Origin: Phaeosaccion multiseriatum
Lineage: Eukaryota; Protista; Ochrophyta, other classes
DNA length: 64,000 nt
Assembly (NCBI GenBank): GCA_965112735.1
Contig: OZ218953.1
Location: forward strand, 3,100,001 to 3,164,000
Direction of reading: 5' to 3'
Shown here: piece by piece, positions 1 through 53,736 of the stretch
Numbering within the stretch: the first letter of the stretch is position 1
Layout: the number at the start of each line of letters is the position of its first letter
The notes under the pieces: model-generated
The model's database searches: none
Seen by the model: only the letters and a program-made list of their open reading frames with translations
Told to the model about the DNA's origin: nothing
Program-made: the position numbers and the translations under genes

Positions 1-1804
1 CGCGTCGGTAGCGGTGACCTCAACCGAAAGGATCTGTAGCTTCAGCGCCACCACCGCTTCTTCAGAAGCAGCAGCGGCAGCAGCACGACGAGTCGAGCTT
101 GACACTGAGCTGTCTTCATAGCCAAGGCCTCTAGTGAGAGGAACAAGAGGAGGAGGAGGAGGAGGGAGCACCTCCGGTCGCGCTCGCTTCACACTGAGGC
201 GCAAGTCGAGGTAGCCTTGCTCTGTCCCTGCCAGCGTCCTTTGCAAGCGCCTCTTCTTCTTGTTCCTCCTCTCTCCGGGGTAAGACCCCTGCACCTGCCC
301 TTGCCCCTGCCTCTCTCGAATACGCCTCTCCTCCTCGTCGTCGCCAACTCGCTCTGCCGGTCCGTATGCCCGCAGATGGTGACGCACGGGACCAGGGTAC
401 GCGCCAGCCCCCGCTAGCACGTCCTCGGGAGAGAGGCACACGCCCCCGAGGTAGCCTTGGTGGGAGGCGAAGGAGCGGCGGTGACGCGACAGGAAACGAG
501 TCACGCTGGTCCAGCGGGGAGCGACTGATGCAAGGGAGAGGGGAGGAAAGGGGGGGGGGGAGGAAAGGAGAGGAGAGGAGAGGAGAGCACAGGAGAGGAG
601 AGAAGAGGAGAGGAGAGGAGAGGAGAGCATAGGAGAGGAGAGGAGAGGAGAGGACGTGAAAGCAGAGCAAAGGGCAAACGCTGTGACATGACAAAAACGA
701 GAACACGAGGGAGCGAGGAGAGTATTAACACACACACACACACACACCCACACATGTATATACATGCATACAACACGCACACATACACACGCACGCACCT
801 TTCTTCGCCAAACGGCGACACAACATCCTCTTCCTGCCCATCGCCCTTGCCACGTGCGCCCTCCACTGAGCCTGAATGAGGGTGGCCATGTCGATGGGGA
901 GTTGTCGCTGTGCCTCCAGCAAGAGGGATCTCTCCTCCTTGAGGCGCTTCACTCTCTCCTTGCCGAGTGCGCGTTGCATCGCATCTTTGTAGAGGCGTCG
1001 CATACCCCGAGCCGCTCGGAGCTCTTGCACTGTCACCACACCGGTGGCCTGGGTGTGCGCGTATGTGTGTATGTGTGCGCGTGTGTGCGTGCGTGCGTGC
1101 GTGCGTGTGTGCGTGTGCGTTCGTGTATATGCGTGTGTAAGTGCGTTGGGTGTGTGTACATGTGTGTGTGCGTGTGGGTGGGTGTGTGAGTGTGTGTTTG
1201 TGGCAGTGGAGGGTAGAGCGGAGAGGGAGGAGGGAGAATAAGCACGTGTCTCCACACACACCCACACGCACACACACACACACACACACCACACGTCCCT
1301 TGAGAAGAGACCCTAGAAGCAGTAAGTCCTTCGTCCCAGCCCCACTCTCTCACTCCTCTCTCCCTCTCCTGCCTCATCCCCCCCCTCTCTATCTCTCCCC
1401 ATCCAGCCCAAAGTCAAGCTTCGTTGTTGGAGAGAGTGAGTCAGTCTCCTTTGTTTACGCGTGCGTACGTACCCAAATGGACTTGTCGCTCGGCGGAGGG
1501 AACAACCCTGGTGGTTGGCTGCAGACGTTAGGACAGAGACACTCCGCCACCCCTGCCATCACCGATAGACTCGCTTGATGGGCCAAGGAGTATCGCTTCA
1601 TGTGCAGGGCACATGCCTCAAGCCAGTGATAGGCAGTGGAAAGGGCCAAGAAAACGGAGCGGGTGCGGAAGCGCCGCCATTGGGCCTAGAAAGGAGGAGA
1701 GGGAGGGAGGGAGGGAAAAAGGGGGGATAGGGAGAGTTGGAGGGAGGGGAGGGAGGAGGGAGGGAGGAAGAGAGAGGGAGGGACACCTATACACACACGC
1801 ACCC

Positions 1805-1872
<68 letters not shown>

Positions 1873-4800
1873 GGAGCAGGACAGCGGCGCGCCTAAGGCG
1901 ACGTAGTTGAGCCCACGCGAACCTCCAGAATCGTGCCTTGAGACTGTAGCGAGCCATGCAACGCTTGAGAAGGGTGGAGGCTTGGCACGCGGTTGTGTAG
2001 GCATCGAGTCGGAGCAGCGTGTGGCCGCGTGTGCCTCGCAGGGAGTGTGCAATGGTGCTGCAGTGGGCACAATAGCGGAGGTGGTGGTAGTGTGGACGAG
2101 GTGGAGAGAGAGAGATGGAGGCAGACGCTGAGGCAGAGGCTGCTGCTGCCTCGCCCCCCCGCCCCCCACCCTGGCCCGCCTGCCCCGCCTGCTGTCGCTC
2201 CCTGCTCGTCCCGATGTGTTGGTGGTGGCCGTGTCTGATGCCTCCCTCGTCCTTGCTATGACTGCAATCGAGACACACGACCCGCCCCGGCAGTGGGCAC
2301 TCGATGCACACCCCGCACGTGGCCAGGCTTTGATGCAAGTATCGGCGGTAGAGGCGCTGCATCAGCGTGGCGGCACGGAGCCGCTTCTCGTGCTCTGCTC
2401 GAAAGAAGAAGGATGCGCTCCTCACGGCTATCACATCCACACCATGGACTACACGCTGGCCCTGACCCCGACCCTGGCCTTGTCTCTGACTGTCCGTGGT
2501 CGTGGCAGTGGTAGCAGTCAAGCCACCATCAACAGTGGGAGTTGTAGCTCGTGCCTCTCGCAGAACATCCATGGTGAGCCCATAGCACGGGGTGCAGAGG
2601 CGTTGCTCGGTGCCGTCGAACCAAACCTCCCATTGCCGACTGCAGCAAGCCTCACAGGCACCCCACTGCTTGAGCACTCGGCGCTGCTTGGCCTGTTGCT
2701 TGCCGAGGACTCTACGTACCCAGCGTTGTAGCACGATGGCTACTTTGTTGTGGAGCTCGCGCTTTCGGCGGATCCGGCGGCGGTTGGTGTAGGTCCACCC
2801 GAGGATGATTTTGCTCACTGGTGGGAGGAGTGGGTGGGGGGTGGGTGGGAGGGGGGGGGGGAGTGGGAGGGGAGGGCATCAGAGGCAACCAATCACAGAA
2901 TTGCCTCCTTCCCTCCTTCCTCCCTTCCTTCCTTGCTTGCTTGCTTCCTCGCCCCCTACTTCCTCTTAACGTACCCACGAGGAGAGCCCGCCTGGCCCTC
3001 AGCTTCCTTACGAAGGCCCTGTCCAGATAGCCCCGCACCACCCTCTGCATCAGGCGGGCGGCGTTCAGCTCAGTGCACAGCTCGTGTCTAAGCCGTCTCA
3101 CCCCTTTCGCTGCCCGGTCTCTGCGCACGTGGCTTTGAATGCGCGTGGCAGCCATCGTCTCCCTGACCAGATTCTGCATTTGTCTCGCCCGCTGTGATAG
3201 GGAGGGAGGGAGGGAGGGAGGGGGGAAGGGAGGAAAGGGGGCAGGCGAGGGCGGTGAAGAAGCGGCAGCCACATGGGTGAGAGAGGCGGACAAGAATAGG
3301 GCAAGCGAGGAGCAGTGACGTCGGAGCGACACTGAAGAAGGACTGATAAAATGAACGAAAGAAATGATGGAAGGAAGGAAGGAAGGAAGGAAGGAAGGAA
3401 GGAAGGAAGGAAGGAAGGAAGGAAGGAAATAAAGAAGAAGGGAAGGAAGACTGGCCGGACGCGCTTTGGCACTTCGCTTCTCTCCTTCCGCAACAACACA
3501 AGATACGAACTACGAAAGCGAACGAAACCAGCGAAGTACTGTACGCGACGCTACACACGCACCCACACGCGCTGTGGATTGTACACAGACACTCTGCACT
3601 ATACCGACACAGACACCAGATCGGCACTGTATTCAGCACTGGATGAGCACAGTATCAAAACTGTGTAAGCACTGCTGTACCTTCACTGCAATACCGTGGT
3701 ACCTGAATGCGATGCAGCCCCGCCCTGGCTAGGCTCTGAATGGCGACTGCGGCCCTCTCTCTCTGCGCCTCCTCCTGCGAGGCGTGGCGCTCCCTCTCCT
3801 TCCACTGAGCCGATCTCTTGCTTCCTTTGGCGGACTTTTGCTGCCTCCATTTGGAGTCTCGGCGCTGCTGTAACTCAAATTCTCTCCGAACCTTGTCTGC
3901 CAAGCGCCGCCGAGAGAGAAAGCCCCTGACCAGGCTTTGCAGGATTGTGGCTGCTGCTGCTGCTGCTGTCTGCGTGTGTCGCTGCGCCGCCTTTTTGCTA
4001 CCGCTGTTGCTTTCCTCCTCACCTTCCGAAGATGCTGTGGCTCCTCTGCTTCTCGTCCGACTTGCTCTCTGCCCCCTCCTGGAAGAAGAACGTGACTTCT
4101 TCTCCCTTCTCCCTTCCGACGTGTGTGGCTTGTGCGGCGTTCCCCGCTCCTGCACAGGCATGCGTGGCAAGCTTCGGCCTCCTCCTTCTGCAACAACCGT
4201 CGCTTCTCCTTCGCCTCCTCCTTCCCCCTCTACTACTCTTCGTCCCCTTCCGCCTACTGTCTCTGCCTCTGCCTCTGCCGCTGCCGCTGCTGCTGCTGCT
4301 GCTGCTGCCGCCGCAGATCCCGCCTTGTCTATCTTTTCTCGCTTGTCCCTCTTCCTATCCTGCGCCAGCCGTACATGCTCCCTTCTGTCTGAGGCCCGGA
4401 GCCGTCCCAAGCCCCCCCTGTAGCGAGCTTGCCCCCACATTGCGATGAGATGGAGAGCTCGGGACTCGTAACCCGCCATTGCTTTGCGATGTCTCAAGAG
4501 CTTGACCTTGCGCACGGCCAATCGAGCCCGGACACACATCTGAGCAGTCGTACGCAGGTAGATACGCAAGACCAAGATGTGTACAGTAAGTGAAGTTCCA
4601 GTTGCTCTCTTCCTTCCTCCACCCTTTCTTGTTTTGAATGAATGATTCATGGGGTGAATGAAGGCAAAGGTCCCAAGGTCTCACCTGTATGGCCGTGGCG
4701 GCGCTCTCTCTTCTGAGGTGTGCGTTGCTGCGCCACCGCCACATGAACAGCGCATAGACTGCGGCGTGACGCCTCCTCAACACGAGGGACAATGCCTGCA

Positions 4801-8048: not shown

Positions 8049-10205
8049 ATGATGAAGCCCCATCGCACGAAGCACGAAGCAGTAGAGCTAATTTGCAACG
8101 ACCCGGACATTATGGCAAAGCTGCAAGCTTTCGTTCTCATAAGGCTGAAGGGTCTGAGCACCGAGAAGGAGGAGAGGAAGAGGAGAGAGAGGGTTGTTTA
8201 CGACGTGGTGCGGGAGGTCTTTGGCTCGTCGGCTGTGCTGCAGGAGATTAGCAGGTGGAGGGCCCAGGAAGAAAAGCACTTTCTGCTGCAGCAAGAGGAG
8301 GATGGAGACAGTCTGACCAATGAGGGCCTGTCATCAAGCAAGACAGATGCGCAGAACCGCCTTCCTTTGAAGCTTCCACCTCTGGAGCAAGAGGAGGATG
8401 GTAAAGCCAAGGGAGGAGCTGGCGATGCGAAAGACTCCTCAGCGACGTGTATACTGGAGAAGGAAGAGGAAGGAGCCGGCCTTTCCAGCTTTGGTGTGGT
8501 TGTGGTTGTTGATGATGACGATGATGATGATGATAATGATGATACCGGTGCACGCGTTGCTCGCGTGATCTCTTCCAAGGTGGCGCAGTCGCAACAGCAG
8601 CAGGAGCAGGAGGGGGAGAAGGAGAAGGAGGAGGAGGTAGCTGAACTGGAGAAGGGAGGAGAGGGCGACACACAAGGGCCCCATAGAGGGTGGGATGGAT
8701 CAGAGAACAGCAAGGAGATGACAGAGAAGGGGAGGCTCGAGGCGGAAGGACACACTGAATCACCCTCTCCTCAAAGTGAAGAGGCAGGACGAACCTTTTT
8801 CTGTTCGGATGACGAGGAGGACCAAGAAGAAGTCGAGGAAAGGACCACCAGCACACCACAAAGTGGGTCAATATCTGCCCAACCGGTGGTCGTAGTTCCT
8901 CCTCAGCTGGTCTTCAAAAGCCAGGTTGGCGAAGAGAGGAGCAACGCGTGCAAGGTGGACTGTTTGTTTGCCTCTTCAGTTCACGTCGAGGTGGCGGCGT
9001 GGCCGGACACAAGAAAGGACGATAATGCTGCTGAGGTCAGCGATTTGGTGGCGCTGAAGGGAGATGTTCTTGTCGAGGAGCATAAAGAGATAGAAGAGGA
9101 GATTGAGGGGGAGGAGGAGGAGGAGGAGGAGGAGGAGGAGGAGGAGGAGGAGGAGGAGGAGGAGGAGGAGGAGGAGGAGGAGGAGGAGGGGGAGCAGGAG
9201 CAGGAGGAGGAGGAGGAGGAAAACGGGTACGGTAGTGACGGCTTTGAGGAGTACCAGCCCGCTGACGAAATGACGCTGCAAAAGCACGTCACGTTTAGCA
9301 CGCCCATAACCACCGCCGAGCACTGCGTCAGGGACATGTTCCTACCTCATGAGGTGGGTTGGAGAGAAGGGCTGGGGGGGGGGGGGGAGGGTGCGTGGGT
9401 GTGGTTGTGCTGCACTTGACCGCGACTGTCTGCTGTGTGTGGCCCTCGGAACTCTCGTCTTACAACACCTGCACCCGCACACAGCCGCGCACCCACACAA
9501 CACCTCCTCCACCTACTCCCACTCCCTCCCTCTCCAGTCATGGCGGTGTTTGCTCTCCTCTCCGTTCTCTTACCAAAGGAGCGCTTTTATCGCCCCTCCC
9601 TCACCTTCTCCCCTCCCTTCTCTCTTGCTCACCAGGTGCCTGAGCTGTTCTATTCTCAGGTCGAGATTGATACCATGGAAGATGAAGCGTATGCTGAAGA
9701 CTTGGCCCATGCGGAAGCAGCAAGTGAGTTTCCTTCTTAGTTGAGCCCCCGCCCCCGCCAGTTGCCGCCCCCCCTCGTCATCACTCTCTTTGGCCTATAT
9801 ACCTACCCCCAGGGAGGCGGCAACAGGGTACAGTGTAGAGCACAACACCACAATACCCATACATGTACCTTTGTACCTGACGTGTTGTTCATCCATCCCC
9901 TCGCATGTGTCCTCGCAGGTTCCCCTTCCTCTGCCGTCGACAGGAAGGGCCACTTGGCCCCAGCACAGGCACAACGAGCACAATCCCAGACACAGACACA
10001 GGTCTACCAAGGCGTCTACCAATGTGCCTCTGAAGGGCCCTGCCAAGCGAGCGTGGTGCCCGCTGAGGGCAATAAAGACGCTGTTGATGCTGTATCGCTG
10101 CTGCTCCTGCCTGAGCCTGAGCCTGACTCAGACGGTGACGGTGACGAGTCGAGCCTCGAAGTGGCCTTTGGGGATGACTCACGAGACTCCGACTCAGATT
10201 TTTGA
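8049..10205 (+). CDS. Acidic, low-complexity hypothetical protein with a KHVTF (RVxF-type) motif, 3 exons
   Basis: Exons 8049-9353 (alternative ATG 7959), 9636-9723 and 9919-10205 have compatible phases. Contains a poly-E tract (9110-9220). KHVTFS is followed by ELFYSQVEIDTM. Confidence 0.6.
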
Positions 10206-36825: not shown

Positions 36826-38356
36826 ATGGAGAACAACATCTTCACTCAGCCGCAGCGGCTAGACATCTACCCCCCCATGTGGGATGTGAAGATGGACGGC
36901 ACGTGGTGCGAGATGCTGTTCCAGACCAAGTGCCCCAACAGCACAACGCTGTTCCTCGGCCTATTCTTCACAGGTGAGGAGGATCATGATAGACCAGAGC
37001 CTGCCACTGCTGGCACTGCTGCCTGTGGCTCGGCCCCGATCGTATTCGTGCCCCAGATATTAGTCTTACTAACGCGAGCTGTCTTCCCTGTCTTTACCCC
37101 CCCCCCCCCTCCTCTCCTGTCCAGGTCGAGGTGCGGTGGTGTTGACCTTCTTCACTGCAATCCTCCTCCTGCTGTTTCGCCGCTTCGGGCCGCAGGAAGT
37201 GGACACGAGGAAGGAAGAACTACAGCAGCGCTGGGAAGAGCACTCAGATAGGTGGACCAGAACGTCCAAGAAGGGCGTCTTGGGCAGCATTGGCAAAACG
37301 GCCTTTTTGCTGCCTCCCCCGGAGGAGGGGGAGGAGGAAGTAGAAGGTATCCGGATGATCGAGCCGGTGGTGGGGGCGAGGTTTGGAATGGAGAAACGAA
37401 TGATGATAGAACCGAAAGGCAGAGACGATGCAGCAGAAGATGAGACGACCACCACGCCTCCCACGGGATCAGCAGCAGCAGATGGAGGCTATGTCCAGCA
37501 GAGGAGGGGCGGTGTAGCGAGAGAGACCCTGTATGTGAGTACCAGCACCGGCCCCACGAGGGTGACCATTGTTGGCGACCGAAGCTCCCCCGCTGTGCCC
37601 CTTGTGACCCTCCACGGCACGTTCCACAACCACCGAACCGCCTATGGCAGACTCACTCAGGTAAGTAAGCTTTTAGAGCTTTTTATAAAGCTTCGTGGCA
37701 GAGAGAGGGAAGAAGAAAGACAAGCAGGACAGTTCGTTGTAATTTCGAAGGGATAGGTAGGACAGCTCCTTCCACACCTCCCCAGCAGACGATTATTTCG
37801 AGGTATGCTTGGCCCCCTTGCCGACACCCACCAGTCCATGTCCTCCTCCTGCCCGCCCGCCCACCCCACCCCACCCCACCCCACCCCACCGCCACCCCAC
37901 TACTCACATTTGGGGTTACGTGCTTCCTGTTCTGTGGGTGTCGTGTCTATCTGTGTGTCTGTCTATCTGTCTGTCTGTGTCTGTCTGTGTCTGTCTGTGT
38001 CTGTCTGTGTCTGTCTGTGTCTGTCTGTGTCTGTCTGTGTCTGTCTGTGTCTGTCTGTCTGTCTGTCTGTCTGTTGCCTTCCTTCGCCCCTTCGCAACAG
38101 GTGCTGACCGACCCTGCCACGGGCCTGAGTGCGCATTGCATCTTCCACATTGACACCCCTGGGCATGAGGAAGACGCGACAGACATTGGCAGCAGGACTC
38201 TGTCGTTGGAGGGGCAGGCTGCCCAGTTGGAGGTGGTGCTGAGGGAGTTGGGCATTGGGCGCTTTGTTGGGGTGGGGGCGCAGGCCGGCGCCAACGTGTG
38301 GCTGCGGTACGCGTGCAATAGAGGCAACGACGCACGAGAGAAGCAAAGAAGTGGAG

Positions 38357-38393
<37 letters not shown>

Positions 38394-39096
38394 CGGAAAT
38401 AGTAGTGGTGGTAGTGGTAATAGTAGTAGCAGAGAAGAAAGCAGCAGCGGTCAGTCCAGCCTGGCCGGTCTCATTCTCCTCAACCCTTCCTGCGCCCCGC
38501 CTCGACGACGGGAGCACAACGTCTGGAAGTACTGGGCCGCCCGGCGCTGGCTTGGCAGCTGGGTAGGGGGAGTGGGAGGACAGGGTGACAATAACAGCCT
38601 GGAAACCATTGTCGCCTACACGTACCCCCTGGCAGCAAGGGCAGGAACAGGTCGCCACCTCAGCCCTGATGCCAAGTGCGCGAGGGCGTATAGGAGAGGC
38701 TTGTCGCATATGAAGGTGGTCAACTTGGTCAAGCTTTATGAGGCGTGGAGGGAGAGAGACGGGATCGGGGAGGAGCGGCTCAAGGGGCTCGCCAGGCTGC
38801 AGGCGCCGGTTACCATTCTTCAGCCAGAGGAGGAAGCAGATGGGGGTAGGGGTGCTGGCATGATGTCGGCTTGCTTTGCAGGCCTGATGGACTTGGACGA
38901 GGAGTGGCAAGCGACGACGGTCTATGAGAAGCTCCTCGGGGCGCACGTGAAGGTCAGCTGGAAGGAGGTGGGCGGCGGGGCTGAGGGGGGTGTAGCAGCA
39001 GGGGTAGAGCCAGGGGTGGCGAGGGGGCTGCTGACAGAGACCGTCCCGGTAGGTGTTGCGGCCCAGGTAAAGGCCTTCTTATCGGGGGTGGTGTGA
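36826..39096 (+). CDS. NDRG/Ndr-family alpha/beta-hydrolase-fold protein with an N-terminal transmembrane segment, 3 exons
   Basis: Exons 36826-36973, 37125-37660 and 38101-39096. Motifs LVTLHGTFHNH, CIFHIDTPGHEEDA, FVGVGAQAGANVWLRYA and LAGLILLNP match NDRG motifs. Confidence 0.8.
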
Positions 39097-39974: not shown

Positions 39975-41525
39975 CTACAGCCTGCACTTGGTCACTCGCT
40001 GCACCACCTGAGATGGGGATACAACAACAACAGCACGAAGCACAACACACAACACACAAGCACAGTTCATTCCGAATCAACGAAAGAAGGCACGCATACG
40101 CACGCACACGCACACGCACACGCACACGCACACGCCTAGACACACTGACAAGCACGCACCTCCTTCCACCTCGGCCCTACGGTGGGGCTGAGCAAGATGG
40201 CCTCAAGACCCAGCACATCTCCGTCCCCGCTGTGTGCCCCCGCCATCTGCTGTCCGCCATGCAAGTGGCTGTACAGCAGGCCCAGACTGAACTTGGGGGG
40301 CATTGGGGGTAAGAATTGGGGGTCCAAAGGGTCCTGGGGAGGTTGTCGGGGGTTGGCCCATAGAGACGCGTCCTTCAGCACTGCGTTTCGTTGCCATCAG
40401 TTGCCATATCGTAGATTTTTTTTTTTTTTTTTTTTTGCATCAGTTGCCAGTGGTTTAGCAGGGGGGACGGGGGGCAAAAGGAGGGAAGGGGGAAGGGGAG
40501 GGGAGAGGAGGGGAGGGGAGGTGGGTTGCTAGAGTTGCACAGGCAGTTAGTTGGATGGGGAAGTCACAAGGATCGAAGGGACAGGACAATGAGGAAAAGC
40601 CCTACTGAGCCTGTGCATCAGTCGGCCTTTCGTCATCAGTCAGTCAGTCAGGCAGTCTCCCTCCCTCCCTCCCCCCCTCCCTCCCTCCCTCCCTCCCTCC
40701 CTCCCTCCCTCCCTCCCTCCCTGATGCTTGGCTGTGCCGGATCACCCACACGCACCTTGTAGCGTATCCACCCACCCAAGCACACCTGCCTGCCCCAAAA
40801 TCAGCCTCCCCTGCCCCATCCCCCGCCCCGAAGCGGCAGAGGAGTCAACAACAGCAGATGTGGTGGTGGTGGTGCTTGTCGACGCCTGCTTCGTCTGTGC
40901 TGAGGTGGTGGTGGAAGGTGACGACAAAGAGGAGCCGGTGCTGGAGGTGGACAAGACTGCGGTGCCTTGGGCTGGGGTAGAGGCAGAGGCGGAGACAGAG
41001 ACGGAGGAGGAGGAGGAGGAGGAGGAGGAGGAGGAGGAGGAGGAGGAGGAGGAGGAGGAGGAGGGGCAACCAAGTCGGTCTAGCTCCGCCAGCAGAAAGC
41101 CCTGGTCGAAGCGGGCGTTGTGCGCGATCATGACCTTGCCCGTGTCTGCTGCGCTGGAGGAGGAGTCAGTCACGTGTAGCTGAGAGAAGAGGGAGAGGGG
41201 GGAGGGAGGGAGGGAGGGAGGGAGGGAGGGAGGGACGGAGGGAGGGGGGTAGGGTGGGAGTGAAGAAAAAAAGAGCACGGGGTATGAGCACGAGAAGCGA
41301 GAGACAGTGAGACAGTGAGACAGGAGGGTGCAGACGAGGAGGGATACTCCTTGAGCGCCGTAGGAGATGACAAATAATGAAAGAAAGGCGGTGAGGAAAC
41401 CCTTGCTGACTCCCTCACCTGCTGCAGCCACTCCTTGAAGTGTACCCACACCTCGGCAAAGGGCCTCGCGTTTTGATCGGCAAGTACCTGGGCAGTGATG
41501 CCTGTCGTCGCATCGTGTGTGTGTA

Positions 41526-41615
<90 letters not shown>

Positions 41616-42841
41616 CGTGCCCGTCAACAAGAGAAAAATCAATGAGGCCTGAGCATCACGCGACCACTTACCCAACCCATCCACCGCGGCACTCGCTCAC
41701 TCACTCACTCACTCACTCACTCACACAGACACACACACTTACTCACTTACTCACTTACTCGCTCACTCACTTACTCTCACACACACACTCACTCACACAA
41801 TCACTCCCTCCCTCCCTCCCTTCCTCCCTAACTCACTCACTCCTCCGTCCGACGCCCCTCAAACGCCCCTCCAACACCCGTATACCCAACACGCGTACCT
41901 GTGATGCTGCTGGCTTGCCACGGGATGTCCCTTTGTGGGTCCACGTACATGACAAAGGAGTGCTCCTTCTTCGCTGACCCCAGCACCTTGGGATGGAAGT
42001 GGACGGACAGGGGATGGCAGAGGATGGGCAGGGCAGGAAGGAAGGCGGTGAGGGAAGGGGTGACCAGGTCTACAGGGGACAAAAAGGAGCGCATTTGAAG
42101 CGCCACTCACTGCCAACAACCAGACGAAACTAAACTAGCGACCAGGTCACGCCAGGCCAGGCTAGGCAACCTCTCCTCCTCCTCCTCCTCCTCCTCCTCC
42201 TCCTCCTCCTCCTCCTCCTCCTCTCCTCCTCCTCCTCTCCTCCTCCTCCTCCTCCTCCTCCTCCTCCTCCTCCTCCTCCTCCTTCTTCTTCTTCTTCTTC
42301 TTCTTCTTCTTCTTGTTCTTCTTGTTCCTGTCGCTGACCTTGCCGGCAATCTGTGTCACCCTATGCGTGGTGCTGTCCAGGCCTGTCGTCTCAAGATCGA
42401 ACAGGACGTGTAACCCGTCTGGACACACAGGCGTTACACAGGCGTTACACAGGCGTTGTATTGAATTGAATTGAATTGGCAGGGAAGGCAGCAAGAAGGG
42501 AGGAGGAGGATCGCGACAAGAGAGTATCCATGCCAAAGGTGGGTGTGAATCAGGGTGGGATAAGCAGCAGCGGCGGCAGAGGGACAGACAGTCTAGCCCG
42601 CACACACACACATACACACACACACAACCACGGCCCCACCTCCCCCCCCCCCCCCCCACAGACACACACACATCATGCACACACACATACACAACCACCC
42701 ACCCACACCCACACCCACAACTACACAAACACAAACACGAACACAAAAGCATATGCGCTCGCACCTGCGAAATCGCCTGCGCTCAGTGTGTCAAACGAGG
42801 CCCTAGTGGGAGCCTTCACCCTCGCCCCGCTGCTACTGCCG

Positions 42842-42878
<37 letters not shown>

Positions 42879-43858
42879 GCTGCCTCTTCTGCTTGAGGAG
42901 TAGCGCCTCCTTAGCGCGCTCTTCCCTTTGTTGCACCTCACGGGCGGCAAGGGCATCGTGATGACTCAAGCCCTGGAGGGAAGACAAGAGAGGTGTGTGT
43001 ATATGTGGTGTTGAGGGAGGGTGAGAGGGGAGAGGAGGGGGGGGGGGAAACAAGGCCAGTGAGGTACAATATGTGGGTGGCGAGAGGGGGGTTAGAGGGG
43101 GGGGAGGGGGGTAATGGCAGGCAGTAGGACGGGTTGTATGGAGTGTAGGGTGACGGGAGAGAGGGACCGAAAGAGAAGGAGACACAGATACACACACACA
43201 CACACACAAAGAAGCCCATCCTCACGTGCGCCAAGACTCAAAAGCCTCTTTCTCCCTCTTCCCTCCCTACCTCCCTACCTCCCTACCTCCTCCTCCCCCC
43301 CACCCCCCCTCTCCCCACCTACCTTGAGCACAGACACATCTCTACCGAAGGTCCTCATCATCATGAGGAGGGATTCCTCGTGGCCGCTACTGAGCTTCCC
43401 CTCACTCACGCGCTCTGCCACTGTGCGTGCGTGCGCGTGGGCTTTCTCCATGAGAAGGCCTGGCGGGCGGAGCATTGGATGGGACGGCAGTGAGTGAGTG
43501 GATGGAAGGAGGAGTGCAGCAGTGGGGCAATCAAAGGGAAGAGACAACAAAGAATCATCACAAAACACCCCTTGCCGCTTCTCCTCACCTCCCCTGCCCT
43601 CCCCTCCCCTTCTCCTTCCCTCCCCCTCTTCGTGCATCAGAGCAGGCAAGCGCGTTGAGCCGCGTCGTCCTACTTATCCCCCCTCCCACCACCCGATCCC
43701 CTCTGTGCAATGACTGACCCCCCCCCCCCCCCCTCCCCCCCGGTCTCACCGTCTGCCCGAAAGTCCGCCACCCGCAGCGTCTTGCCCAGGAGGAACCCTT
43801 TTTGCCGTACCCCGAGAAGGTCTCCCGGCCCTCGCAGTTGCAGGTCCTGGTCAGGGCA

Positions 43859-43908
<50 letters not shown>

Positions 43909-43920
43909 GAGAGAGACACA

Positions 43921-43976
<56 letters not shown>

Positions 43977-43989
43977 CAGAGAGAGAGAA

Positions 43990-44036
<47 letters not shown>

Positions 44037-46407
44037 AAGAGAGAGAGAGGAGGGGAGGTCAGAGAGAGAAGAGAGAGAAAGAGAAGCGAGAGACACAAGA
44101 GAGATCAGAGAGCAATGAAGACAAGAGAGGGGCGAGGGCAAAACAGGGCAAGGCAGGGCAAGACAGATAGAGAGAGAGATAAGGACATGCCGTCTTGCAT
44201 CTTCCTTCCCTCCTTCCATCCTACCTTCTCGGCGATGTGAAATCCGTCTGTGCTGCTCTTGAGCACCTCGAGTCGCTGCTTACCCACTGCGCCGATGTCC
44301 GGGTCGTGCAGCAGGAGACAGTGACATCGACCCAGGAGCTGCTCTTCTGCACGTGGGAGGGGGAGAGAGGGGAGAAGAGGGAGAAGGATGTGGGGGGAGA
44401 TGGGGGGAGAGGGAGAGGGAGAGGGAGAGGGAGAGGGAGAGGGAGAGGGGGGCAGAGGAGAGGATAGAGAGACGAGAGAGCATGGGAAGAGGAGAGGATA
44501 GAGAGACGAGAGAGCATGGGAAGAGGGCGGAGAGCACAGCTCGAGGGTTGAGGAGAAGCAAAAGTTCCAAGAGGTGTTGCGCGGTGCCATTCAGAGGAAA
44601 TGTGGTGTGTGTTTGTGTCCGCGCACGCACGCACGCACGCCCTCACTCACTCACTCACTCCCCCACTCACCCTCGCTGCTGCTCCCCTCGCCTGAGGATG
44701 TGGAGGTGCCACCTGCTCTGCCCACCCTTCCTCTGATCTGATGCAGCTGCGCCAGACCGAACTGCTCTGCGTTCTCAACGATGCAGATGGTGGCGTTGTG
44801 GACATCGACGCCCACCTCGATGATAGAAGTTGCCACCAGCTGGGAGGGAGGGAGGGAGGGAGGGGAGGAAGCAAGGGGGGGGGGATAGCAGACGCACCAA
44901 CACCAACGAAGGGAAATTGTCAAATGGGAGTGGGGGGGGGGTAGACGGTACAGGAGGACACGCACAAGCACACGCAAACGTACGCCAACAAGGGGGACGG
45001 CGCATTGATGGAGCGAAAGAGGGTGTAGGGAGGGACGGGGTTTGAAACAAGAGGAAACACCACAAGCCACACACACACACACCCACACACACACACACAC
45101 CCACACACCCACACACCCATACACACAGCTACACATAAATGCCCACCCAGTTCCACACACAGCTCCACCACTCAGCCCCGCTCACGCTCACCACTCGCAT
45201 GTTTCCCTCCCCTCCCCTGCTGAAGGCCTCGAGCGTGTCTGCCTTCTCCTGGGGCTTCATCCGTCCGTGCAGCAGGCCCACCTCATGCCTGCCCAGTGCC
45301 TCAGACACGTGACTGAAGCGCTCCTTCACACTACCTACATCCTCCCGAGACGAGCTGCAAGGCGGGGGGGCAATCAACAGGCAATGTGCAATGGGGGATG
45401 GCAGTCAATGGGCAATGGGCAATGGGGGATGGCAATCAACGACAGGCAACGGGCAATGGGCAGTGGGGGATGGCACTCAACGGGCAAGGGGCAAGGGGAA
45501 AGAAGGGGCAATGAAGGCTGAAGCTCTTTTCCCCACCAACCCACCAACCCACCTGGCCTCCACGAAGGGAAGTACCCAGAACACCTTCACGTCCATACGG
45601 GGCTCGTGCTGGGGGGGGGGAGGAGGACAGACGAGGGGCAACAGTTGGTGATACAACAGCGAAGAGAGAGAAGTGAGGCAACAAGAGGTGAGGCCAAGGA
45701 GAGGAGCGAAGGAAACATTCGTTTGTTGTGCGTAGCTGGTGCCGAAAGCCGAAAGAGTCGGTCGGTGTCTGTCCCTCAGCGCGTTGCAGGCCAGTTCAGG
45801 CCATGTCAAGTCCCCCTTCCTGCACAACTTGTTAGGGGAAGGAGCGACTTCACGCGACGAGCGCGACTCACGCACGCACGCACGCACCCCCGCCCTCACT
45901 CACATCGAGTTGTCGCTTAATCCTCGCCACGACTTGATCGATCATACCCGTGTCCACAACGGTGGTGAGCACCTGCCTGCCCCCCTTGGGTTTGTGCATG
46001 AGGCGCGTCACATCCATGTCACCGAACATGGCGAGGGACAGAGAGCGCGGGATTGGTGTGGCTGACATGTACAGGCTGGGTGGGTGGGTGGGTGGGTGGG
46101 CGTGGAGTGGGAGGGGAGGGGAGGGGAGGGGAGGGGAGGGGAGGGGAGGGGAGGGGAGGAGAGGGGAGGGGAGGGGGGAGAGGGAGGGCTTGAGGCGGGG
46201 CCTGTCAGAATGGAACGGCAAAGCTCAAGTTCAAGCTCAAGTTCAAGTTCGGGCAGAGGGAGGGAGGCATATTTGAAACACGCCGAAGGACGCATAAACC
46301 CAAGGACATTTTCGTACTGAATAAATGCTCGACAGCACACAACGCACTCACGCAACACACGCACACGCACACACGCACGCACGCACTCTCTCTCTCTCAC
46401 ACACACA

Positions 46408-46442
<35 letters not shown>

Positions 46443-46942
46443 ACATACACACGCACGCACGCACTGACCTATGCGCCTCTTTCGCCAGGGCTGCTCGCTG
46501 CTCCACCCCGAATCGCTGCTCCTCGTCCACGACCACGAAGCCTAAGTCAGCAAACTGTACGGCGTCTCCAAGTAGGGCGTGAGTGCCCACCGCTATGTCA
46601 ATGCGCCCCTCCCTGAGGCCCGACAAGATGGCCTCACGAGCCTTCCCCTTGACGGCTGAGGACAGGAAGCCCACTCGCACTTCCTTCGTCTGTGGCGTGT
46701 GAGGTGTGTGATGTGTGATGTGTGGAAGGTGGACGAAGGAAGTGTGGCGTGTGAGGTGTGTGATGTATGATGTGTGGGGGGTGGTGTGTGAGGAAAGTTG
46801 AGCACGGAAAGAGCTCACAGATAGGGCAGGGGGAGGAGGAGGAGGAGGAGGAGGGTGCCTGCACCCACCCACGCCCACACACACACAAACCCACACCCAC
46901 ACCCACACCCACACCCACATCCAAAACCCGGCCAAACACACA

Positions 46943-47005
<63 letters not shown>

Positions 47006-47790
47006 CCGCCCAAGCAAACAACCACACACACATTACAGCACAGCCCACACACCTCTGGGTGTTGCTCCTTCATCCTCCTCACAGCCGCGCACACATTCTT
47101 GTAGTGCTGCTGTGCGAGCACCTCTGTGGGGGCCAGCAATGCCGTCTGCGCACCCGCCTCGACTGCGGTGAGCATTGCCAGCAGAGCTACCACCGTCTTG
47201 CCAGTGCCTACATCTCCCTGGAGTAGTCTGATAAGAGGAGGGGGAGGAGGGGCGGGGCGGGGGAGGGGGGGAGGGTGTTTGTGTGTGAGTGTCGGTCGCT
47301 GAGGCGCAGAGGAAGGAGGAGGGGCAGACGTAGGGTAGGCCCTGCCGTGTCAGAGAAGGATGAAAGTTAGTTACGTGTTCATCATCCTCCTCCCTACACT
47401 GACTCACTCACTGGCTCACAGACAGACAGACAGACTGACTGACTGACTGGGTGACTGACTGACTGAGTGAGTGAGTGACTGACTGACCTGTTCATCCTCC
47501 TCCCTACACTGACTCACTCACTGGCTCACAGACAGACAGATAGACTGACTGGGTGACTGACTGACAGACTGACTGGGTGACTGACTGACTGACTGACTGA
47601 CTGAGTGAGTGAGTGACTGACTGACCTGTTCATTCTCCTCCCTCCTGCCCTTGTCAAGTCTCCAATGACATCCTGCACCGCCTCCTCCTGGCCCGCCGTG
47701 AGGGAGAAGGGAAGCGTCGCTCTGTATAAGGCAATCGATACCACCACCGATCGCACACGGGGAGGAGGGGGGGGGGGACAGAGACAGCAA

Positions 47791-47843
<53 letters not shown>

Positions 47844-50401
47844 GAAGCTGACGTTTTGAGAGAAGAATGAACAGCACCGAAGGGAGGGAGGCGCCTAGCC
47901 ATCGAAGTGCACAAGGTATGCGAAAGGTAGTACAAAGACAATAATAAAAAATAAAGACAGATCCACTTAGCGTGAGGGTTAGGGATAGGGTTAAATCCGT
48001 TCGGAGATTAGATGAAATAACATGCTTCATGATTCCATTACCTGCACGCACTGGCAAGGGTACCATCGCCCACCAGAGCTGCGCAGGCGGAGTCGCTACT
48101 CTGGCGTCGGAAGGCCATGGCAAGCTGTCCAGAGAAGAGCTCGTCGTAGGCCAGGCGCTGCCTCGCTGCTCGCAAGGGGGCAAAGGGGGGATGGTAGTGA
48201 ATGGGGAGGGAGGGAGGGAGGGAGGGAGGGAGGGAGAGAGAGAGGGAGGGAGGGAGGGAGGGAGGGAGGGAGGGAGGGAGGGAGGGAGGGAGGGAGGGAG
48301 GGAGGGAGGAAGGGAGGAAGGAGAGCGAGAGGGAGGTCAGAGGTCGACCGTGTAGATGGAGAGACAGAGAGATACCACGAGCTCAATTCATCGAAAAAGC
48401 ACGCACCCACGCGGAGGCACACACACGCAGGCACACACACATACACACACACACGCGCGCGCCCACACACACACTAAGCGAGGCGTTCGTACCTCGTCCC
48501 TGAGGGCCCAAGTCCTCCTCCGTTTCGGGGTGGTGCACCTGTTGGTTGTTCATTGTTTGCAGTGGATGGAGACAAAATTGAGCCTTACGTAGGGTATATA
48601 CCATGGCTACCTCTCCTTTCCTGTCCTCTCTCCCCTTCTCCCCCTGGGCAACGAAAAGGGGCGGATCAGACACACGCACACACACACACACACACACACA
48701 CGACACACACACTTACTGTATACACTCACACACACACACACGCACCAGCCACAGAGCCTTGACGAAGCCGGGCCAGTCCATGGCCTCCCTTGTCTGCAGA
48801 GGCAGCCAGTCACGACAGATCTCCTCCTTGCCCAGAGACTCCCGCAGCGCGGCGTCGATGTAGTCGCGCAGCTTCTTCGTAGTGAGGCCTTTCGTCAGCC
48901 TGAGAGAACGGGAGAGGGGAAGCGGATGGGAGGAACAGACGGGAGAGAGAGGGAGAGAGAAAGAAATAAAAGAAGAGAGGGGAAGGAAGGGAGGACGGGA
49001 GAGAGGGGGAGGGAGGCAAGTGGCATGAGGGGAGAGAGGGATGGAAAAACCGGAGGGGGGGGGGGGGAGAGCGCCTGCTGGCCTGGCCCTTTCTGTTTGT
49101 ATTTCCTCCCCCTCCCCTCCCCTCCCGCCCTCACCCGTAATGCGGCTCCACTCCCAGCACTTGGTCCATCTCCTCAATGGGCTTGACAATGTCGGGCTGC
49201 ATCTGCAGGGTGTTTTGGTACGTCTTGAGGGTGCCGCTGATGACCCGCACCTCGCCTTTCTGCATGAGCTCCTTGATGGGCACCCACGTGTACCAGTTCT
49301 TCACAAAGAACACCAGATTGATGGGTGTGCCTGCTTTCAGGTGTGTCATGTGTCAGGTGTAGGGTGTGAGGTGTGAGATGTGAGGTGTGAGGTGTGAGGT
49401 GTGAGGTATTAGAGGGGAGACAGGAGTTTAGAAGTGGCAGTGAAGGAAGGAAGGGGAGGAGGAGGGAGGGGAAAGAAAGCTTCTTCTCTCAAGATCCAGC
49501 CCAAGGCTGCTTTGTTTTACATTGCTGTATTGTTCTATCTATCCATGAACTCTGCTTCAGCTGTCCCTCTCTCCTTCTTGTGTTCACCTTGCTCGTCATA
49601 GCAGTGCACGGTCTTGGGAAGAGAGGGTTTAGGGGGCTCAGAGATGCTCCGCACCTGCACAGACAGACAGCGGTTGGACAAGGATGAAGCATGTTGGTTG
49701 GTAGGGGGGTTGGATGTACAAAGGGAGGGACAGGAGAAAGAGAAAATGGAGAGCAGTGTGAGGCTGAGCAGCTGTGGAGAGCTTCGCTGAGGAGCAAGAG
49801 AGGCAACTTTGTCGCCTTATGGCAGGGGCAGGGGCCACATGCCACCCAATCGCCTTTCCTGGGAGGATTCCTTCCCCAGCCCCCAAACAGCAAAATTTCA
49901 CGCCCCTAATTCCCGTAACTCCCTGTGTCTGTCAGCCTGTCTGTCTCTCGCTCCCCCCCTCCCCCCCCCCTCCACGCTCGTTTCTCGCTCACCGTGACAA
50001 CTGCGGTGACAACCGATCCATCCTCTGCCTCCGTCAAATTCGAGACGACACTGCCACAGATGGAGAGGGTGGTGGGAAGAAACCATTGGGAGATGCACAG
50101 CAGCAAGGTCAGTCGGGAATGAAGTCGTTGATATGCAAACCGTGTCCACTCCTCTTGGAAATGCTTCAGTCACGTGAGCAAGTTATGTGACCCAATGATG
50201 ACAAAAGAGGGGGCGATATTTGCTCACCTTCGATCCACGATCCCTGTGGGCAGGTGAAGGAGAAGGTCGAGCACAGAGGTGATGCCCAGTTTGGACAGGA
50301 GCTCTGCACTCTTGGGCCCCACGCCGCGCAGGACCGTGCACGGAGAGCACAGAGTGCTGCACACCGCCACGAGATTGTCTGGCGTCGCCCCTGCCCCGCT
50401 G

Positions 50402-50441
<40 letters not shown>

Positions 50442-51135
50442 TGCTGCCCCTAATGCTGCTGCTCCTACTACTGTCGATTCCAAATCTGTTGCCAGTCCGC
50501 CGGTGATCGTGCTCGGCGCCGAAGCTCCCACTTTCTCCATTGGCTCCTCGGCAAGCGGGGGAGAAGCGGGGAACTGAGAGGGACGAGAAGAGGGCGGACG
50601 AGGAACGGTGGGACGAGCACAGAGAGCGACTGCCCGGCTGGAGGAGGGAAGAGAGAGGCGCACCACTGTCGCCTTGGTACAGCCGGCTGGGAATGAGGCC
50701 ATTTGCGCCGCTGCTGCTTCTGGGTCTGCTGTAGCATCTGCTTCGTAGGCATTGGAGCCCCTTCGCTGCTACCCCCGCTGCTGCTCTACTGCTGCTACTT
50801 CTGCTGCCGCCGGCTCGAGAGATTGCCAGCATCGCTGAGTCCGGTCGACAGTGGCTACGAGTTGACCTGCTGCTGCTCCTACCCTCCTTAGTGCTTTTGA
50901 AGGTCGACTGGAGGGAGAGCGCAGAGCTGGCACGGAGCCAAACGGGGCTCACTACCAGCACGAGCGCGAGGGCAGTCGACAGGAGCAGCGGCAGCGGTGC
51001 GACGCCGTCCGAACGACGTCTCGCGCCCTTCGCCCTTGCCCTCTCGTACCGCTCCTGCTCCTCCTCCCGGCTTGCCTCGTGCTGCTCCTGGGGCTGCCGC
51101 TGCTGTCTCCAGTGTTCGCGCAAACGACTCTTCAT
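39975..51135 (-). CDS. recG: Organelle-targeted RecG helicase fused to a C-terminal DEDDh 3'-5' exonuclease domain (over 20 exons)
   Basis: RecG motifs: [146 protein letters not shown]. These are followed in frame by [16 protein letters not shown] and AHSGDGDV. Last exon 40007-39975. Confidence 0.92.
47376..47650 (-). repeat. Intronic ~120-140-bp duplications of the RecG exon end and donor site
   Basis: GGAGGAG(A/G)ATGAACAG|GTCAGTCAGTCAC appears at the true exon end (~47626) and again at ~47488. A decayed third copy lies at ~47376. Confidence 0.65.
48205..48330. repeat. (GGGA)n polypurine microsatellite in a RecG intron, representative of dozens of intronic SSRs
   Basis: Long GGGA run. Similar (CA)n, (GA)n, (GGAA)n and (CTCCT)n tracts occur at e.g. 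1815-1870, 3370-3428, 43860-44030 and 63260-63510. Confidence 0.9.
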
Positions 51136-51659: not shown

Positions 51660-52787
51660 CTACCGCGCTGCGGCCGACCGACCGGGGTGGAGCATATGGT
51701 GCAGATACCCACCCAAGTTGAACCCACGCCGCGGCCCCTTACTTTTTTCCTTCGGCGCCGAGGCTGCTGCTGCTGCTACCTCTGCTGCTGCGCCTTTCGT
51801 GCCCTTTTTACCACAGCCAAACAAGGAGAATCCACTGCCGCTTGTCTTGGACCCCGCCCCTTCCTCTCCTGCCACCCCCCGTCCCTTGCCCTTGCCCTTC
51901 TTCTGCTCCTGCACATTCTCCTGCTCCTCCTGCTCTAACCGTAGGCGCACCTCCTTCATCACTTCGGCCACTTGCTCTCTGATCTCGTCCGGCGTACCGG
52001 GGCTGAACACGTCCCCCAGGCGCTGCCCCTTGGCGTCCGTGACACTCGCGTCGGCCCCCTTGGCCAAGAGCACTTGCAGAGCCACGCAGTTACCCGTGTA
52101 GGCCGACACAAACATTGGCGTCATGCCGGTCTGTTCCCGCGCCTCCAGTGCCGAGGGGTCACGCGAAAGGATGGCGGTCGCTATCTCCTCGATCTGAGCC
52201 CGGGGGCCTTTACGAGTGGCCAGCACGTGAAGCGGTGTGAAGTTGCTATTGTCCCTCGACGATGGCCAGGCCCCGTGCTTGAGCATGAGATTCACCACGG
52301 GGACGAGGCCCGCCATCACGCCATAGTGGAGGGGACTGAAGCCGACGGAGTTGGCCACGTTCACCCTGGCGCCCGCGGCGAGCAACACCTCCACCACCCC
52401 GACCCCCGTGCCCGCTGCGTAGTGCAGGGCGGCGTTCCCTTCCCGATCTCGCTCGTTGACCACATCTGCATGGTACCTGGCGCCCTCCGCTTTCAGGATA
52501 TCTCTCATGGCGCTCGTATCTGCGCTGAGGGTTGCGGTGAGCAGACGGGAACGGGGGATGTCCGTGGGGTCGAAGGGGCGCTCCTGCCGCTGCTTTGCCA
52601 GCTTGAGCTTGAGAATCTTGCGGTACGCGTCTTGCTTAATCTTCTGCGCATGATCCTTCTGCTGGTGACTCCGCCGCTGCTGCTGGTTGCAGTCCTCCTC
52701 TTCTACCACACTCCGCTGCTGCCTCTCCTCCGTGACCCCGCCCGTTGCATCGCTACTCGCCTCCAGCAGAGCACTAGCCGCTGGCAT
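51660..52787 (-). CDS. Intronless ankyrin repeat protein
   Basis: Repeats VNERDREGNAALHYAA, VNVANSVGFSPLHYGV, RDNSNFTPLHVLA and EQTGMTPMFVSAYTGN. Likely ATG at 52787; the ORF is open to 53237. Confidence 0.85.
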   Translation of the reverse strand: MPAASALLEASSDATGGVTEERQQRSVVEEEDCNQQQRRSHQQKDHAQKIKQDAYRKILKLKLAKQRQERPFDPTDIPRSRLLTATLSADTSAMRDILKAEGARYHADVVNERDREGNAALHYAAGTGVGVVEVLLAAGARVNVANSVGFSPLHYGVMAGLVPVVNLMLKHGAWPSSRDNSNFTPLHVLATRKGPRAQIEEIATAILSRDPSALEAREQTGMTPMFVSAYTGNCVALQVLLAKGADASVTDAKGQRLGDVFSPGTPDEIREQVAEVMKEVRLRLEQEEQENVQEQKKGKGKGRGVAGEEGAGSKTSGSGFSLFGCGKKGTKGAAAEVAAAAASAPKEKSKGPRRGFNLGGYLHHMLHPGRSAAAR

Positions 52788-53208
52788 CTTGGCCGTGCGG
52801 CCAGAACTGAGAAGAGAATTGGAGGCGGCTCCTTCAGAAACGGGTGAGGTGAGGTCGCCGCCGTCCCTTGTAACCGGCCGCCACTGCAAGTGTGCGAGCT
52901 GCGGACTCAAGTTCCCTGAGACTGGGGCTGTGCAGCGATCCTCTGCGTACGTCAATGCTGTGGCTGCGAGAGATGGGAAATGGTGAGGTGTGCGCCTCTC
53001 GTCGCGAACTACCGTTCTCCGCGAGAGCAGTATAGGATGATCAGGTGGGGTGCGACTGCCCACGCGCAAGGGCCAAATCGACTTTTCTTTCTTTTCTTTC
53101 CAACCGCTGAGAGAACCGCTCGGGCGTTCTCTGCCGTTACACACGTGATGGTATTTCAAAAATGAAATACAATGTACCCCCCCAGAACGCAAATTCAAAC
53201 TCACATAC

Positions 53209-53736
53209 GCCACATGCACGCCTGACCACGACCACATACATGGTGCCGTTTTGCTCTAGGCCGCTAGCCGCTCGGGGGGGGGGGGCCTTCGGCCGATCTA
53301 GGCCTAGGCCGGTGTCCTCCGGCCGCTCTAGGCCGCTCACTTTTCAGTCCTAGGCGGCCTATAGCCCGCCTCTAGGCAGCCTCCCAGTGACCGTGGGCGC
53401 GTGCGTGGTGCGTGGTGGGCCACTGCCGCCCAGCCAGTGGGTAGCAGCACACCTGTAGGTCTGCACTCCTCGTAGGGCCAGCGAGGCGGAAAGAGACAAC
53501 ACGAACGAAGTCTACTCCTCACTTCCAATCCCATGCAATGAAACTGACTACTCTTTGTACACTCCCACCGTCCGCCTAGTAGTTGCTTGTTGGCTGGCGT
53601 CTGCCCTAGGCCGCGCGGGCCTCCGGCCCGCCTAGGCCGCCTAGGCGGCGGCATATAAATAGGCCGAGGGCCTACAGCCCTCGCTAGGTCGGGCAATTTC
53701 CCCAAATAGGCCTAGGCCGCTAGGCGTGCATGGGGC
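53209..53736. mobile_element. Candidate MITE with CTAGG(CC)-rich subterminal arrays
   Basis: 14/15 inverted repeat GCCACATGCACGCCT / AGGCGTGCATGGGGC. Dense CTAGGC motifs at 53250-53380 and 53575-53725 flank a unique core. No clear TSD. Confidence 0.4.

Follow-up and report, generated by a model that had tools for sequence, protein, structure and literature searches.

Do the RecG-type helicase and the DEDDh-type 3'-5' exonuclease that are encoded one behind the other in the genome of the alga Phaeosaccion multiseriatum belong to one protein or to two adjacent genes? The stretch of DNA analysed, hereafter the window, comprises 64,000 nucleotides of contig OZ218953.1 (GenBank: GCA_965112735.1, positions 3,100,001 to 3,164,000), and all coordinates below are counted from its first nucleotide. 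The initial annotation of the window had proposed one polypeptide in which RecG is followed by an intact DEDDh exonuclease. We conclude that the minus strand from 50832 to 39975 is very probably a single nuclear gene, which encodes a presequence-like N-terminus, a complete RecG, a short disordered linker and an intact DEDDh exonuclease. The RecG motor would feed the peeled-off 3' strand to the nuclease, likely on an organelle genome. The proposal of one polypeptide is supported by full-length collinearity with fused proteins of other algae and by relatives in which the junction of the two domains lies in one exon or in one open reading frame (ORF). The case for the fusion rests on comparison with these relatives.

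RecG-exonuclease fusions in relatives

The best overall blastp matches of the window model are brown-algal fused proteins. With tblastn, the window is collinear with two of these, P0039 and P0040, from 50343 to 40157, which covers the N-terminal helix-hairpin-helix (HhH) and wedge region through to the end of the exonuclease. Searches seeded with the proteins P0009 and P0011 gave full-length fused proteins with the domain layout RecG_wedge, DEAD, Helicase_C, RecG_dom3_C and RNase_T. These are found in Ectocarpus sp. 6 (967 amino acids, aa), in a EukProt entry (1482 aa), in Scytosiphon promiscuus (1497 aa) and in Thalassiosira profunda (1302 aa), and three more proteins with the same five domains have 1111, 1340 and 1390 aa. 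RecG followed by the exonuclease is the layout of P0009, P0011, P0039, P0040 and P0042, from Ectocarpus, Scytosiphon and Thalassiosira, and also of P0043 and P0044. The predicted fusion is thus conserved in diatoms, brown algae and related contigs.

In several relatives the junction can be read directly. L086, a metagenome contig of 28.6 kb, carries RecG exons immediately upstream of exonuclease exons. A single exon, which starts at 8877 after an 84-nt intron (8793-8876, GTGAGG..CACAG), encodes without a change of frame AHADLLEEAHALAQEYV..LDLLMGIF from the C-terminal helices of RecG, a linker of ~95 residues and FMTLDCETTGLTADDRIIQLAAK with ExoI. Because all three parts lie within one exon, the domain junction of L086 is free of splice inference. 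RecG_dom3_C matches this exon with an E-value of 1.1e-10, and comparing it with the PDB sequences gave no significant match.

Two further contigs carry both domains in one uninterrupted ORF with RecG_wedge, DEAD, Helicase_C and RNase_T: L088 (3487 nt, ORF 35-3370, 1111 residues, P0041) and L089 (4525 nt, ORF 255-4277, 1340 residues). Both ORFs translate exactly into database proteins. L088 and L089 are either transcript contigs or intron-free genes; both possibilities imply an unbroken frame across the two domains. The metagenome contig L004 also has RecG and then the exonuclease, with a stop-free stretch of 355 codons from the RecG tail into ExoI. Between 5000 and 8400 its frame switches inside contiguous conserved RecG motifs, for example at ..LRCAEAG / RKQAVLLAPTDLL. 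As these breaks lie inside conserved motifs and the coverage of the contig is 0.5, we read them as assembly indels and not as introns, and for the same two reasons L004 is weaker evidence than L086.

Gene model

The spliced model of the RecG-exonuclease gene has 23 exons on the minus strand, with a coding sequence of 3792 nt and 1263 residues. Its upstream part was built from tblastn anchors of fused relatives and a splice-site search constrained by frame and stop codons; from the TRG motif onward, the exon ends were set by script. For exons 2-7, relaxed tblastn anchors from four fused relatives were combined with a splice-site search under the same frame and stop constraints. The exons are, in the order of transcription:

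50228-50832, minus strand: exon 1, candidate ATG at 50832, Ser/Arg-rich presequence-like N-terminus and RecG N-terminal HhH region
50050-49920, 49333-49135, 48899-48746, 48538-48493, 48165-48048 and 47721-47626, minus strand: exons 2-7, RecG wedge domain and linker to the helicase core
43750-47227, minus strand: exons 8-15, SF2 helicase core and TRG motif; the TRG exon ends at 43750 (..FRADG) in phase 1
43323-43459, minus strand: exon 16, LLMEKA..SVLK, the final 45 residues of RecG
42765-42972, minus strand: exon 17, GLSHH..poly-Ser..GDFA, linker of 70 residues
42339-42418, minus strand: exon 18, ExoI motif with FDLETTG at 42401-42381 (D962, E964)
41899-41986, minus strand: exon 19, exonuclease segment VLGS..YVDP
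41419-41501, minus strand: exon 20, exonuclease segment ITAQVL..PFAEVW
40756-41179, minus strand: exon 21, ExoII motif with AHNARFD at 41125-41105 (D1063), Ser/Thr-rich insert of ~95 residues, WVDTLQ
40160-40380, minus strand: exon 22, ExoIII motif with AHSGDGD at 40237-40217 (H1229, D1234)
39975-40007, minus strand: exon 23, terminal exon ending in TAG

All 22 introns are GT-AG introns of 152-586 nt, and the spliced frame has one stop, the TAG at 39977-39975 that terminates it. The junctions quoted in the initial annotation proved canonical and phase-compatible throughout, and the frame is kept from the TRG exon to the TAG at 39975. The peptides and motifs that it named (DLE, HNARFD, HSGDGD, ITGIT and PFAEV) are all present in the spliced frame, and the limits that it gave, 39975-43460, agree with the stop codon and with the acceptor of the last RecG exon.

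Exon 1 has 67-69% identity to P0039 and P0040 in tblastn. A second in-frame ATG lies upstream at 51135, and the choice of start codon between 50832 and 51135 is uncertain. The boundaries of exons 2 and 3 are the least certain of the model, and a small exon is possibly missing there.

The genome around the gene has a GC content of ~0.59, is rich in microsatellites and is intron-dense. Almost all introns of the gene consist largely of microsatellites, such as (GT)n, (CT)n, (GAG)n, (GGGA)n and (GAGT)n, and their lengths cluster tightly at ~200-400 nt. Several of them are open in more than one frame, so that calling exons from ORFs is misleading in this gene. With 22 microsatellite-rich introns, the gene would probably be split or mis-modelled by automatic annotation.

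One gene or two

Bacterial RecG alignments stop at residue 883 of the model, two residues short of the end of exon 16 at residue 885 (coordinate 43323), and this marks the end of the RecG part. The window protein runs 378 residues past the RecG end. The same order follows the TRG motif across the family: (F/L)(K/R)VAD.., a helix, a conserved L..LL..(F/L)G patch at which RecG ends, a spacer and the exonuclease entry (V/I)DL..x(V/I)(V/L).D.ETTGL. Every member has a low-complexity spacer of variable length, from 40 to ~300 residues, and the spacers of the window (~70 residues) and L086 are the shortest of the family.

In the window the spacer is encoded by exon 17, which has 208 nt. This length is 1 mod 3, which is what a phase-0 donor (43323) and a phase-1 acceptor (42418) require between them, and the frame would be broken if the exon were skipped. 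The two introns that flank it have 350 and 346 nt, a size typical of the gene, which leaves no room at the junction for a terminator or 3' untranslated region (UTR), a spacer, a promoter and a 5' UTR. Neither the linker exon nor exon 18, the first of the exonuclease, has an in-frame Met.

The locus could also be read as two adjacent genes, with a RecG stop at 43275 and a separate exonuclease that starts from an ATG at ~42752, in frame with ExoI through the microsatellite. Both alternative frames do exist as ORFs (43275-43649 and 42162-42764), and retention of the intron after 43323 gives a stop 19 codons on. The exonuclease N-terminus would then consist of ~110 residues of translated GT/GGT microsatellite, and the gaps at the junction, being of ordinary intron size, are too small for the ends of two genes with a promoter between them. 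Two database entries also look like stand-alone exonucleases, P0007 of Ectocarpus fasciculatus (339 aa) and P0005 (334 aa). P0007, however, is the truncation at a contig end of the fused P0009, a protein of 716 residues from the same cluster which has RecG motifs V and VI, the TRG motif, the linker and an exonuclease identical to that of the 339-residue entry. The contig of P0005 is 5'-truncated and offers no Met ahead of the domain. Together with the relatives in which one exon or one ORF spans the junction, this makes two genes very improbable.

Several observations weigh against a single fused protein. A sequencing-run search for the stretch found only four true holders (shares of 0.83-0.86), which are apparently DNA; the RNA runs reached shares of 0.05-0.06, most likely from microsatellite words. 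The linker exon (42972-42765) consists of low-complexity sequence without clear homologues of its own. Unlike Ectocarpus and Scytosiphon, Pylaiella littoralis (L001, GenBank: GCA_964200295.2) showed no RecG exon in the 10 kb that precede the exonuclease, the model of which has 511 residues and is marked partial. Runs of N are absent from the Pylaiella locus. Brown-algal introns are long, and the missing RecG could be explained by introns of great length, by an assembly error or by a gene that has really been split. Finally, P0045 (794 aa; Logan/ENA) carries an exonuclease of the algal family (VDVETTG, ITGIS, VAHNARFD, YVDTL and SHNAMGDV) behind an N-terminal region of ~500 residues that is not RecG, so the nuclease domain is not bound to RecG and has been joined with at least two partners.

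Read in the light of the fused proteins, the 'stand-alone' exonuclease models of 339, 334 and 511 aa in the databases can be corrected to 5'-truncated or partial pieces that belong to the fusion or are consistent with it.

The RecG half

By sequence, the RecG half is a complete bacterial-type RecG with wedge, SF2 motor, TRG hairpin and C-terminal helices. In blastp with the spliced model, residues 157-883 align with residues 5-687 of a 693-residue bacterial RecG at ~41% identity (E ~1e-161), so the alignment takes in both the start of the wedge region and the C-terminal domain 3. Of the SF2 helicase motifs, I, II, III and VI are present, as is the TRG motif. Motif I (GDVGTGKT) lies at 47217-47194, motif II (DEEQ) at 46527-46507 and SATPIPR at 46065-46045; a further helicase-core motif lies at 44749-44717 and the TRG motif at 43834-43796.

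Pfam matches to exon fragments include DEAD (9.4e-17), Helicase_C (1e-7) and RecG_dom3_C (2.7e-4), all of them better than an E-value of 0.001. RecG_wedge matches the fragment of exon 1 with an E-value of 1.2e-4 and 22.2 bits, slightly under the 23-bit cut-off; the relatives P0039-P0044 have a precomputed match to this family (Pfam: PF17191). The closest non-fused relatives of the RecG half are all alphaproteobacterial RecG proteins, from Rhodospirillaceae, Iodidimonas, Bradyrhizobium, Bartonella and Paremcibacter, with 39-42% identity, which hints at a mitochondrial origin.

The exonuclease half

Judged by its residues, the exonuclease half is predicted to be a catalytically intact DEDDh 3'-5' exonuclease similar to DnaQ, TREX1 and RNase T. 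In a MAFFT alignment of the window protein with ten family members (11 sequences), D962, E964, D1063, H1229 and D1234 stand in invariant columns. The window protein thus has D-x-E in ExoI, the D of ExoII and H-x4-D in ExoIII, as in DEDDh exonucleases. Its exonuclease shares 41-46% identity with the brown-algal members.

The window exonuclease was scanned against Pfam exon by exon, and these scans are weak: RNase_T on the 26 residues of exon 18 alone has an E-value of 0.0016 and falls below the cut-off. The match of the whole domain comes from the profile of the family and thus covers the window copy indirectly. This profile matches the PolC exonuclease domain (2.5e-18), TREX1 (3.6e-14) and the DinG exonuclease (1.1e-8), and also DnaQ and RNase T, and relatives of the window exonuclease have a precomputed RNase_T match (Pfam: PF00929). 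In the AlphaFold model of the brown-algal orthologue P0039, taken in place of the window copy, the domain (residues 1205-1445) has a pLDDT of 91.9. The best Foldseek matches of this brown-algal model are TREX1 and RNase T (E ~1e-11, TM 0.59-0.76), and the domain is accordingly predicted to have an RNase H-like alpha/beta fold.

Searching with the ExoIII exon (40380-40160) found only seven relatives at E<1e-3 among 1.84 billion representatives, all of which belong to the algal exonuclease family itself. Its hallmarks are VLGS..YVDP, ITGIT, DTLxxLK and a C-terminal RWR; in the window, the family-specific RW(K/R) motif is encoded within exons 22-23. A metagenome search with the exonuclease alignment gave bacterial DnaQ-like genes at 27-40% identity and no orthologues, and these 80 loci were not used. 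An ESM Atlas search gave only generic RNase_T fragments.

The Ser/Thr-rich insert of ~95 residues in exon 21 lies in a loop that varies across the family. It is open in all three frames and could hide an in-frame intron, so that its coding status is uncertain. One such intron, with the donor CTTG/GTTGCC and the acceptor GGCAG/GTGTG, was rejected because it would remove GRLILGQ, which is aligned with conserved brown-algal residues.

This low-complexity insert and the poly-Ser run of the linker are also what one might expect of a decaying pseudogene, or of a catalytically dead exonuclease that serves as a DNA-end-binding or protein-interaction module. ExoIII, moreover, reads HSGDGD in the window against H-x-A-x-GD, which is usual in the family. 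Yet the frame of 1263 codons runs over 23 exons with no stop or frameshift, all five catalytic residues are kept and the loop of the insert is also variable in P0005 and the diatom proteins. We therefore regard decay or loss of catalysis as extremely unlikely.

Proposed mechanism and substrate

How might the two activities work together? In E. coli, either RecG or the 3' single-stranded DNA (ssDNA) exonucleases remove 3' flaps at fusing forks, RecG by converting them to 5' flaps, and recG cells that lack three 3' ssDNA exonucleases are inviable (PMC4999828). The RecG motor of the fused protein would bind branched DNA, such as a stalled or fused fork, a D-loop or an R-loop, through its wedge, pump the duplex and strip the strands at the branch. 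The displaced 3'-ended strand would be fed to the exonuclease, tethered behind the motor by the flexible linker, and degraded. Once the 3' end is gone, it could neither prime replication nor re-invade: a D-loop, flap or R-loop would be removed irreversibly, and restart of the PriA-like or recombinational kind would lack a primer. The proposed coupling of unwinding to 3'-end degradation would be consistent with the known anti-recombination role of organellar RECG1 in plants (PMC9129000).

The fusion might also be real with a nuclease that acts mainly on RNA. R-loops would then be unwound by RecG and the 3' end of the freed RNA digested by the RNase T/TREX-like domain, which would limit replication primed by R-loops or conflicts between transcription and replication in the organelle. 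RNase T and TREX1 are indeed among the profile and fold matches, the Foldseek list includes a TREX1-RNA product complex, and RecG has been discussed as a possible R-loop dissociating enzyme (PMC4999828). The closest sequence match, however, is the proofreading domain of a DNA polymerase (PolC, 2.5e-18), and the genetics of E. coli links RecG with 3' ssDNA exonucleases and not with RNases (PMC4999828). We consider RNA as the main substrate unlikely.

Compartment and descent

The fused protein is probably organellar. We favour the mitochondrion as its site on two grounds: alphaproteobacterial RecG is the nearest relative of the RecG part, and the N-terminus is, by eye, rich in Ser and Arg. Some features would fit the plastid or the nucleus. 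The protein of Thalassiosira profunda starts with MAPRRALFMMLLSLLQRTGAFSN, which by eye looks like a signal peptide of diatoms in which Phe follows the cleavage site, as in plastid import, and the alternative start at 51135 in the window lies ahead of a hydrophobic stretch. Against this stand the best non-fused matches of the RecG part, all of which are alphaproteobacterial, and the N-termini of the brown-algal and window proteins, which by eye are Arg/Ser-rich and have no clear signal peptide. A site in the nucleus or plastid is somewhat unlikely, on evidence that is weak in both directions.

We tentatively suggest a wider reading, which we consider plausible and short of probable. RecG-DEDDh may be the ancestral organellar RecG of ochrophytes, of alphaproteobacterial or mitochondrial descent, that acts as a one-chain eraser of 3' ends. 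Since each displaced strand would lose its 3' end, the protein would keep organelle genomes from recombining ectopically, from over-replicating where forks converge and from being primed at R-loops. It could then be taken as a 'Rosetta-stone' fusion: if this is true, the redundancy of RecG and 3' exonucleases in E. coli would reflect a direct hand-over of the substrate between them.

Neighbouring genes

An open frame of 531 codons with ankyrin-like repeats (..NAALHYAAGTG..GFSPLHYGV..NFTPLHVLA..) is located at 51663-53255 on the minus strand. This frame shares its strand with the RecG gene and immediately precedes it, at ~500-800 nt from the candidate start codons. Downstream of the RecG gene, on the plus strand and thus opposite to it, is an ORF of 369 codons (37987-39096) that is interrupted by Ser/Gly low-complexity runs. 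By eye this ORF is alpha/beta-hydrolase-like or NDRG-like (..GHEEDATDIG..FVGVGAQAGANVWLRYA..).

Novelty and significance

Full-text literature searches found no paper that describes a RecG-exonuclease fusion. Public predicted proteomes do contain the fused proteins, under the labels 'unnamed protein product' or 'hypothetical protein' and with Pfam matches attached. The initial annotation, which knew of no DEDDh fusion for RecG, had named an architecture that is already common and annotated as grounds against its reading. This applies in part: the architecture is not unique to the window genome and already exists, with Pfam matches but unnamed, in diatom and brown-algal proteomes, though the literature searches found no paper on it. 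The contribution of this study is the recognition of a conserved, uncharacterised RecG variant of ochrophyte algae, of which the window holds one intact member, and not the discovery of a new protein.

Despite decades of work on RecG, its role in vivo is still under debate. The strongest genetic clue to the role of E. coli RecG is its overlap with the 3' single-strand exonucleases (PMC4999828). A fusion in which all catalytic residues are kept across diatoms and brown algae would be independent evolutionary evidence that both activities act on one intermediate. As diatoms can be transformed, they offer a tractable system for the function of RecG on organelle genomes.

Comparison with known systems

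Bacterial RecG of the E. coli and T. maritima type resembles the window protein over its full length, with the HhH and wedge region, SF2 motifs I-VI, the TRG motif and the C-terminal helices in collinear order. The bacterial protein stops where exon 16 ends; to this the window protein has in addition a presequence (~155 residues), the linker and ~300 residues of DEDDh exonuclease. That bacterial RecG has no nuclease, as the initial annotation had stated, holds among the best 119 bacterial RecG matches, which have ~670-720 residues and none of which carries RNase_T.

Plant RECG1 of Arabidopsis and Physcomitrium is likewise a nuclear-encoded RecG homologue, and its role in the surveillance of organelle-DNA recombination is the one that we would expect for the window protein. 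We know of no nuclease domain in plant RECG1. A RECG1 of this kind ends after domain 3, unlike the window protein with its 378 additional residues. Branch migration in plant mitochondria depends on RECG1 (PMC9129000). The origin of the RecG in the window may differ from that of plant RECG1, since it appears alphaproteobacterial-like.

DinG of Bacillus and Staphylococcus also combines a helicase with a DEDDh-type 3'-5' exonuclease in one polypeptide, and it is reported to act under replication stress (PMC12525004). The arrangement is different: DinG has an XPD-like helicase with the nuclease at the N-terminus, whereas the window protein has RecG with the nuclease at the C-terminus behind a disordered linker. 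WRN is similar in principle, as a branch-processing helicase joined to a 3'-5' exonuclease, but it is a nuclear protein with a RecQ motor and an N-terminal nuclease of the DEDDy type.

TREX1, RNase T, DnaQ (epsilon) and the PolC exonuclease have the DEDDh motifs in common with the window protein (profile E-values from 2.5e-18 to ~1e-10). In these proteins the domain stands alone or is attached to a polymerase, whereas the algal family has conserved hallmarks of its own.

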